Positions 57,651 to 57,790 are shown, numbered from the whole stretch's first letter. The stretch: DNA of 63,000 nucleotides, filler included, from Ministeria vibrans ATCC 50519 (GCA_943704425.1; 4 parts of 4 records of this genome joined end to end with filler, not necessarily neighbours in it), one strand, 5' to 3'. Notes: generated by a model not told the origin, from the letters alone. Translations and numbers: made by a program.

Positions 57651-57686
57651 TCACTTTTTCCAAAATTTGTCAAAATAGAAGGAATC

Positions 57687-57768
57687 AGCGCTTGACACGG
57701 GTTCGAATCCCGTCTCGCGTATTGCGAAACACGCGTGTGGTGTAGTGGTTTAGCATGGGCGCTTCCCA
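57687..57768 (+). tRNA. Circularly permuted tRNA-Gly(CCC): 3' half 57687-57721, 9-nt spacer, 5' half 57731-57768
   Basis: 3' half: A38, GCGCT, variable loop TGAC, T arm ACGGG-TTCGAAT-CCCGT, acceptor CTCGCGT, A73. 5' half: ACGCGTG, TG, D arm GTGT-AGTGGTTTA-GCAT, G, GGCGC, TT-CCC-A. The reassembled halves give a 73-nt cloverleaf. Confidence 0.88.
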
Positions 57769-57775
57769 AGACTTC

Positions 57776-57790
57776 TTTTTTTTTTTTTTT
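57776..57790 (+). terminator. Pol III oligo-T terminator (T15)
   Basis: T-run starts 8 nt after the end of the tRNA 5' half. Confidence 0.7.

Follow-up and report, generated by a model that had tools for sequence, protein, structure and literature searches.

The locus and its parts

The window is a stretch of 63,000 nucleotides of DNA from Ministeria vibrans ATCC 50519 (GCA_943704425.1), in which four pieces of the genome are joined with filler, and the genome sequence analyzed here is its 8.1-kb piece at 54902–63000. Within this piece an STK19-like gene and the ARPC1 gene are transcribed away from one another, and in the gap of ∼600 nt between their mRNAs lies what is very probably a genuine circularly permuted tRNA-Gly(CCC) gene, in which the tRNA's 3′ half is written upstream of its 5′ half on the same strand. 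The original prediction, made from the sequence, had placed such a gene in this divergent intergenic region. Reading of 57500–57960 agrees to the base with the permuted order and with the boundaries proposed for the two halves, and the position between the divergent genes is confirmed by spliced RNA contigs and cDNAs. The gene with its signals (57645–57790) forms part of neither mRNA. The components are collected in Table 1.

Table 1. Features of the probable permuted tRNA-Gly(CCC) locus and genes on the same piece. tRNA positions are those of the mature molecule; Pol III, RNA polymerase III.
Feature	Position	Strand	Description
TATATAT, TATA-like element	57645–57651	+	Candidate for an upstream promoter element of Pol III, 36–42 nt ahead of the 3′ half (pattern scan)
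T5 run	57655–57659	+	Upstream of the leader (pattern scan)
Leader (predicted)	57672–57686	+	GGAA at 57681–57684 complementary to U32–C35
tRNA 3′ half	57687–57721	+	35 nt, positions 38–73: anticodon-stem 3′ strand, 4-nt variable loop, T arm, 3′ acceptor strand, discriminator A73 (read from sequence, ARAGORN, pair list)
B box GGTTCGAATCC	57700–57710	+	Perfect match to the consensus described in PMC3978253; 5′ of the A box here
Intervening linker TTGCGAAAC	57722–57730	+	9 nt; closes the acceptor stem as a loop; no T-run inside
tRNA 5′ half	57731–57768	+	38 nt, positions 1–37: 5′ acceptor strand, U8, D arm with G18G19, anticodon-stem 5′ strand, U33, anticodon CCC, A37 (read from sequence, ARAGORN, pair list)
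A box TGGTGTAGTGG	57738–57748	+	Good match; downstream of the B box
Trailer AGACTTC	57769–57775	+	Alternative fold: CUUC able to pair with GAAG of the leader
T15 run	57776–57790	+	Signal of the Pol III terminator type, 7 nt beyond the 5′ half
STK19-like gene	56500–57333	−	Upstream neighbour, transcribed away from the tRNA gene; spliced RNA contig, mRNA up to 57333
ARPC1 gene	57934–59827	+	Downstream neighbour; six exons; cDNA contigs L121–L124
Pol gamma N-terminal exons (exonuclease domain)	61185–61760	+	Pfam and PDB matches; gene runs off the piece

No run of four or more T occurs on the plus strand between 57660 and 57775, and the next such run is the T15 that starts at 57776. A Pol III transcript that begins beyond 57660 would therefore run without interruption and stop 7 nt after the 5′ half. 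The T5 run would halt Pol III transcripts arriving from further upstream, so that the start should lie beyond it. TATA-like sequences are described upstream of the algal permuted tRNA genes in a 2014 review (PMC3978253), where it is argued that the order of B box before A box is unsuited to TFIIIC and that in the algal genes the upstream TATA-like element takes over. By analogy the TATATAT sequence is a candidate for an upstream Pol III promoter element here. In its sequence features the layout as a whole, with a TATA-like element upstream, no inner T-run, a downstream T-stretch and a predicted helix–bulge–helix (hBH) motif, matches that of the type II permuted genes.

The swapped halves are recognized as tRNA-Gly(CCC)

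In the native order no tRNA is called by ARAGORN anywhere in 54902–63000, and none by Rfam at E ≤ 10, the Rfam output being a weak T-arm match to the 3′ end of tmRNA and a sub-threshold match to YrlA. It had been supposed that standard scanners would miss the gene, and for these two programs in native order they do. The same weak, T-arm-driven matches are all that Rfam returns for the whole piece and for each half; these results are uninformative because the searches were of unrearranged sequence. When the halves are swapped, by a script working directly from the window, ARAGORN finds a 73-nt tRNA-Gly(CCC).

A pair-by-pair check of the swapped sequence bears out the fold that had been predicted, including the perfect T arm, the acceptor stem with one mismatch and the discriminator A73. 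The T stem comprises five pairs. The anticodon stem also has five, a G•U followed by four G–C or C–G pairs, and carries the loop UUCCCAA. The D stem is formed by G–U, U–A, G–C and U–G pairs, while six of the seven acceptor pairs are made, with U6•U67 mismatched. The nucleotides U8, A14, G15 with C48, G18G19, U33, A37, U54-U55-C56 and A58, and the G53–C61 pair, are all in place by reading. We take C35, C36, C2:G71, G3:C70 and A73 to be identity elements of tRNA-Gly, and the anticodon CCC agrees with them. CCA is not encoded, for TTG follows directly after A73, as in the eukaryotic permuted cases. GGG codons occur in the genes of the host.

How readily would such a call arise by chance? In a rotation scan every 130-nt window was joined to itself, whereupon a permuted gene reads as an intron-containing tRNA in ARAGORN. 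Over the 8.1-kb piece the scan returns a single locus, which is the gene described here; five overlapping windows yield the Gly(CCC) call, and the ‘intron’ falls at its canonical position. No locus was returned from 40 dinucleotide shuffles of the piece. In 4.86 Mb of shuffles there were ∼9 spurious loci at default thresholds, corresponding to ∼0.015 per piece or 0.12 per 63 kb, and because of this rate the default call taken alone is not overwhelming. When the thresholds are raised to 110% all the shuffle-derived calls are gone, whereas the swapped sequence is still called at 120%. Of 913 ordinary tRNA calls in the loci retrieved, 212 pass at that level. Thus the swapped sequence scores like a good genuine tRNA, within the upper quarter of ordinary tRNAs.

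A predicted splicing motif at the junction

With the cloverleaf enforced, two folds of nearly equal stability are predicted for the precursor, at −25.9 and −24.0 kcal/mol, a difference of 1.9 kcal/mol. In the first of these the leader at 57672–57681 is paired with 57772–57781 on the trailer side, placing both processing sites in one internal loop. In the second, the leader GGAA at 57681–57684 is paired with U32-U33-C34-C35, generating four Watson–Crick pairs between positions 32–35 and −3 to −6. U57685, C57686 and A38 then form a 3-nt bulge containing the predicted 3′ processing site, and the bulge around the 5′ processing site, which another helix closes, is of 6 nt instead of 3. A57684 (−3) is paired with U32, and this is the predicted anticodon–intron pair; in yeast pre-tRNAs the canonical register of that pair is likewise 32 with −3. 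A test specific for the hBH register was used in place of one for the leader–trailer duplex, and showed that complementarity to positions 32–35 is present in 3 of the 494 four-letter words of the intergenic region (0.6%). An hBH at 37/38 is described in the review as a mark of the green-algal and nucleomorph permuted genes and as the form of substrate for the eukaryotic endonuclease (PMC3978253).

Positions 38–39 are AG, and so are the first two letters of the trailer; a join at 37/38, 38/39 or 39/40 would yield an identical product. The break had been claimed to fall exactly at 37/38. The AG repeat permits the other two joins as well, but the predicted hBH geometry picks 37/38 from among the three, and to that extent the claim stands.

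The arrangement in other assemblies

Runs of eleven studies contain at least part of the stretch, and contigs from four runs, two of them of spliced RNA, were aligned. A contig of 3,836 nt from a 2022 run of the same organism covers 56500–58787 without any difference, passing from STK19 into ARPC1. A contig from an algae metagenome matches 57319–57765, again without difference, and so spans the upstream flank, the 3′ half, the linker and nearly all of the 5′ half. The metagenome represents an independent strain, because it has A>G at 56891 and, after 57892 in the intergenic region, seven extra nucleotides (AAAAATC); the A>G change is present also in an RNA run of ‘organism B’. In the tRNA gene and its immediate flanks all the runs are identical. 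Logan contigs tend to stop at the T15 run. The original prediction had suggested confirming the locus at the level of reads, and the contigs of the second run and of the metagenome display the same arrangement with no differences.

A misassembly of tandem normal tRNA genes is excluded as far as the contigs show, since two independent contigs have the parts in the same order. Tandem normal genes find no place here on other grounds too, with no tRNA recognized in native order by ARAGORN or Rfam and no remnant of a partner alongside. The flanks of 100 nt are devoid of traces of the missing halves, the local alignment score being 7 against 5.8 ± 1 for shuffles, which agrees with the earlier statement that neither half has a normally placed partner.

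The host is a non-fungal opisthokont

Part of a gene for Pol gamma is encoded on the same piece. Two exons, 61185–61445 and 61557–61760, align colinearly with positions 2–73 (54.9 bits) and 75–113 (42.8 bits) of the Pfam family DNApol_Exo, for which the curated cutoff is 26.7; the searches used single exons, and the alignments kept each exon in a row of its own. Among PDB entries the matches under E 0.9 are to Pol gamma chains (Pol gamma-1) only, the best with E 4.5e-6. The gene probably has its putative start near 60004. According to a 2024 survey of the organellar family A polymerases, Pol gamma is exclusive to opisthokonts (PMC10877234). Its presence on the piece therefore makes the host an opisthokont, as had been surmised from the sequence. 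An alga or a contaminant as the source is ruled out by Pol gamma on the same piece together with the continuous 2022 contig, and for the same reasons, Pol gamma and a contig that runs from STK19 into ARPC1, a red-algal origin of the piece is not credible.

ARPC1 bears on a closer placement of the host. The spliced ARPC1 of the host (P0376) is 100% identical to exon 2, and was found only in JGI and Logan RNA assemblies, with no copy in NCBI, UniRef or EukProt; the lineage thus seems to be one without an annotated genome in those three collections. Its closest relatives, at 65 and 62% identity (P0407 and P0384), occur only in Logan RNA assemblies. The next form a plateau at 54–58% that includes a jellyfish, Syssomonas, Capsaspora, Pigoraptor, Chromosphaera and many animals. 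Protein searches with single exons gave nothing nearer than 74–80%, and a profile search was dominated by animal sequences. In a maximum-likelihood tree of this single gene, with no choanoflagellate in the sample, the host groups with its 65% relative at 100/100 and the fungi split off at 89/96. The host falls into a polytomy with Capsaspora, Syssomonas, Chromosphaera, Pigoraptor and the animals, and the breviate Pygsuia is nested inside. Because the tree is of one gene, has no choanoflagellate and has a breviate within it, we hold the assignment to a non-fungal opisthokont that is probably a holozoan. The organism is marine, its DNA or RNA being present in runs from algae, seawater and marine metagenomes.

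A probable permuted gene and the alternatives

Taking these data together, we estimate the probability at about 0.72 that the locus is a genuine type II (37/38) circularly permuted nuclear tRNA-Gly(CCC) gene in a marine non-fungal opisthokont; that it functions is probable. A number of points weigh against this. For a tRNA-Gly of a eukaryote, the A1:U72 pair and the U6•U67 mismatch are presumably unusual. At minimum free energy the swapped 73-mer does not fold as the cloverleaf (z = −0.27), which gives no support either way. Since the 5′ site lies in a 6-nt bulge the predicted motif would be a relaxed form of the hBH, and the leader–trailer duplex taken alone is marginal when set against a shuffled leader (p ∼0.08). 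The two strains are identical at the tRNA gene and its immediate flanks, and are thus uninformative on selection. Contigs of poly(A)-type RNA leave 57334–57933 uncovered, although a tRNA is not expected in such data. Lastly, the sequence analyzed is the 8.1-kb piece, and a conventional tRNA-Gly(CCC) gene is possible elsewhere in the genome.

The locus could instead be a silent relic, left when a tandem duplication of tRNA-Gly(CCC) lost its outer halves or when two fragments were joined by rearrangement, and not transcribed or not matured, with GGG read by other genes. We think this unlikely. Such a relic would have no reason to keep complementary breakpoints at the sole site of the eukaryotic endonuclease, nor to keep an hBH with the anticodon–intron pair in exact register, for which the chance expectation is the 0.6% given above. 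The AG overlap of the trailer with positions 38–39 does fit an origin by duplication, and permuted genes have reportedly been proposed to arise when a tandem duplication loses its outer halves; yet nothing is left of the lost halves here, and the element scores above most ordinary tRNAs. A1:U72 and U6•U67 could be early decay. The inverted A and B boxes make normal TFIIIC-driven transcription doubtful, and the RNA contigs, which are of poly(A) type only, give no expression signal for the gene. Against this, a relic would have no reason to have a long T-run right after the 5′ half or an interior that is free of T-runs.

It is far less probable that the product is a tRNA-like non-coding RNA akin to the YrlA type of Y RNA, having a T arm, a closed acceptor-like hairpin and a D arm on a terminal stem, and never being cut and rejoined. 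The topology is the same, and YrlA is the best Rfam match for the whole element at 20.7 bits (E 1.1), with 18.4 bits on the 3′ part, but this is far under the YrlA gathering score of 69. A Pol III transcript with a U-run at its end and paired ends also resembles the eukaryotic Y RNAs. Metagenomes were scanned for a T arm followed by this D arm within 18–48 nt, a pattern that is too general: it returned at least 120 loci, and among the matches listed ∼100 are ordinary tandem tRNAs, 17 are Y-RNA-like mimics and the present permuted gene is absent. The 17 mimics do have this architecture and are not tRNAs. However, they lack an anticodon arm and pass from the D arm into a long terminal stem containing G+C, and on swapping they give inconsistent ARAGORN calls or none, whereas the element in the window has a full 5-bp anticodon stem, a 7-nt loop with U33 and A37, an anticodon matching the acceptor identity set, and terminal pairing that is short and A–U rich.

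A chance resemblance or an assembly artefact is scarcely credible: there are spurious loci in shuffles at default thresholds, and the nearby T-run and N gap break some contigs, but spurious calls are gone at 110% where the real one passes 120%, and contigs of a second study and an environmental metagenome have the parts in the same order with no differences.

The mimics have some common features of their own. Sixteen are the loci L004, L006, L011, L012, L016, L023, L027, L036, L038, L043, L046, L049, L055, L071, L101 and L117. Their contigs are dense tRNA arrays, with 137 tRNA calls over 17 loci (these 16 and L070). Each has a T arm, a closed acceptor-like hairpin whose linker is often TGGTC or TGGTCA, and a D arm, with no anticodon arm. 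In many the terminal stem is of the type AGGTTCT...GAGAACCT, and the scores lie under the Rfam gathering threshold for YrlA.

Proposed maturation

How might a permuted tRNA-Gly(CCC) gene be expressed in this organism? We infer every RNA step, the order of the steps and the function in translation by analogy with the algal genes, whose route is the most likely one; for these, maturation through a circular intermediate has been demonstrated experimentally, as the review relates (PMC3978253). Pol III would start between a few and ∼25 nt upstream of 57687, perhaps positioned by the TATATAT at 57645–57651; such upstream positioning is proposed because the B box precedes the A box, an order unsuited to normal binding of TFIIIC. 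A single RNA would result, comprising leader, 3′ half, 9-nt linker, 5′ half and trailer, and stopping in the T15 run. This RNA would fold as a full tRNA body, the linker closing its acceptor stem and its anticodon stem staying open. Nucleotides −3 to −6 of the leader would pair with 32–35, creating the same hBH and anticodon–intron-pair geometry as an ordinary 37/38 intron. With its intact mature domain and its junction at 37/38, such a precursor should be accepted by the ordinary ruler-type eukaryotic endonuclease. The tRNA splicing endonuclease would then cut after A37 and before A38, tRNA ligase would join the ends to give a circle of 82 nt (73 + 9), RNase P and tRNase Z would excise the 9-nt linker, and finally CCA would be added.

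It is possible, but we regard it as rather doubtful, that the gene is both functional and the only source of tRNA-Gly(CCC) in the organism; it may then be one of several hidden permuted genes in a holozoan lineage.

Relation to known permuted tRNA genes

The 2014 review counts 34 permuted genes, in Cyanidioschyzon merolae, two species of Ostreococcus, two of Micromonas, the nucleomorph of Bigelowiella natans and Thermofilum pendens (PMC3978253). In a review of tRNA gene repertoires from 2026, the only hosts mentioned are C. merolae, O. tauri, B. natans and archaeal lineages. The hosts listed in the original prediction agree with both. Over the reviews of 2014–2026 this amounts to one red alga, four prasinophytes, a green-algal nucleomorph and one crenarchaeon (PMC3978253), and permuted tRNA genes have often been treated as an algal or ‘ancestral’ peculiarity. 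No permuted tRNA outside algae and archaea was found among the matches listed in the literature searched, the coverage of which excludes most subscription papers. The intervening sequences of the known genes are given as 1–74 bp in the 2014 review (PMC3978253), a range into which the 9 nt found here falls.

The closest parallel is with the type II genes of the prasinophytes Ostreococcus and Micromonas and of the B. natans nucleomorph, as these are described (Maruyama et al. 2010, via PMC3978253). There too the 3′ half lies upstream on the same strand, the junction is at 37/38 with a relaxed hBH suited to the eukaryotic endonuclease (predicted here), the upstream region is AT-rich or TATA-like, a T-stretch lies downstream and CCA is not encoded. 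The intervening sequences are short in both, 5–64 bp in those genes and 9 bp here. The isotypes differ, being Ser, Leu, Cys, Arg, Asn and iMet in the green lineage according to that text, but Gly(CCC) here. Expression is reported there for some of the prasinophyte and nucleomorph genes, whereas the Ministeria gene is known from its sequence. Unlike those organisms, the host here is an opisthokont of non-photosynthetic type that bears Pol gamma.

In C. merolae there are permuted genes for the same isoacceptor, reported in 2007. In the review's account of them (PMC3978253) they share the type II junction, the TATA-like sequence upstream and the T-stretch downstream, and have an intervening length of 7 bp as against 9 bp. 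These Gly(CCC) genes also carry a 13-nt intron at 55/56, which is lacking in the present gene, and C. merolae has many permuted and ectopic-intron genes together with an atypical set-up for endonuclease and transcription, in which that text records no TFC1, TFC3 or Sen15 found; no such peculiarities are known from the present host. The genes have been compared by description, and an independent origin would be the simplest reading.

The permuted tRNA-iMet and tRNA-Tyr genes of the crenarchaeon T. pendens have the permuted order and a very short intervening sequence in common with the gene described here, but differ in having a junction at 59/60, an encoded CCA, canonical introns, and an archaeal promoter and endonuclease (PMC3218864). 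Ordinary tRNA genes with a 37/38 intron have in common with the predicted precursor the processing sites, the 32/−3 pair, a bulge of 3 nt around the 3′ site and a mature domain that is intact, and the leader and trailer here resemble the intron of such a gene that has been opened. What differs is that here the acceptor end is the closed one and the intron the open one; ligation would therefore yield a circle, and what RNase P and tRNase Z have to cut would be a loop. The YrlA RNAs of bacteria and phages (Rfam RF02553) resemble the element in the T arm, the closed acceptor-like hairpin, the D arm and the RNA ends on the anticodon side, but have no anticodon stem–loop, a long terminal stem of the Ro-binding type and no splicing.

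Implications

The known type II architecture is thus present in a new major lineage, the Opisthokonta. If the gene is functional, the tie between permuted tRNA genes and photosynthetic lineages would be broken, and a recurrent, independent origin could be argued wherever the machinery for 37/38 splicing exists. It would follow that the standard eukaryotic endonuclease, ligase, RNase P and tRNase Z can process such precursors in the animal/fungal lineage, and a natural small circular RNA would arise from the tRNA splicing pathway in a relative of the animals. On the same condition, tRNA counts that are based on scanners can miss genes in protists, as can analyses of codon usage and tRNA adaptation. 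If it were in addition the sole source of tRNA-Gly(CCC), permuted genes would be able to arise and persist in heterotrophic relatives of the animals independently of the algae, and an endonuclease of the animal type, acting by a ruler mechanism, would together with the ligase mature permuted tRNAs via a circular RNA.

Neighbouring genes and repeats

The 5′ end of the ARPC1 mRNA lies at 57934–57940 in three independent cDNA contigs, at least 144 nt after the T-run. The introns of this gene are 242, 146, 80, 86 and 65 nt in length. For the STK19-like gene the Pfam match to Stk19 is weak (E 0.0034, under the curated cutoff), and both introns, 56523–56587 and 56930–56994, are exactly 65 nt. This short and narrow size class of introns may be helpful in placing the host.

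Further upstream, on the plus strand, C-terminal exons of a phospholipase B-like gene occupy 55420–55839 (Pfam PF04916, E 1.2e-20) and are cut by the left edge of the piece. Intron 2 of ARPC1 contains 35 A followed by a gap of 10 N (58797–58841), where the contigs of the 2022 run break as well. A CT-rich minisatellite with a unit of approximately TCTCTCTATCACTTTGT(A/T)TCTTTCT, present as 7.2 copies of 33 nt at 60890–61131, lies between the putative first exon of Pol gamma (60004–60312) and the next (61185–61445), probably in an intron. The same minisatellite recurs at 62623–62969, with periods of 31 and 78 nt, and as a third, short copy at 62218–62271, and it is probably a dispersed intronic repeat.

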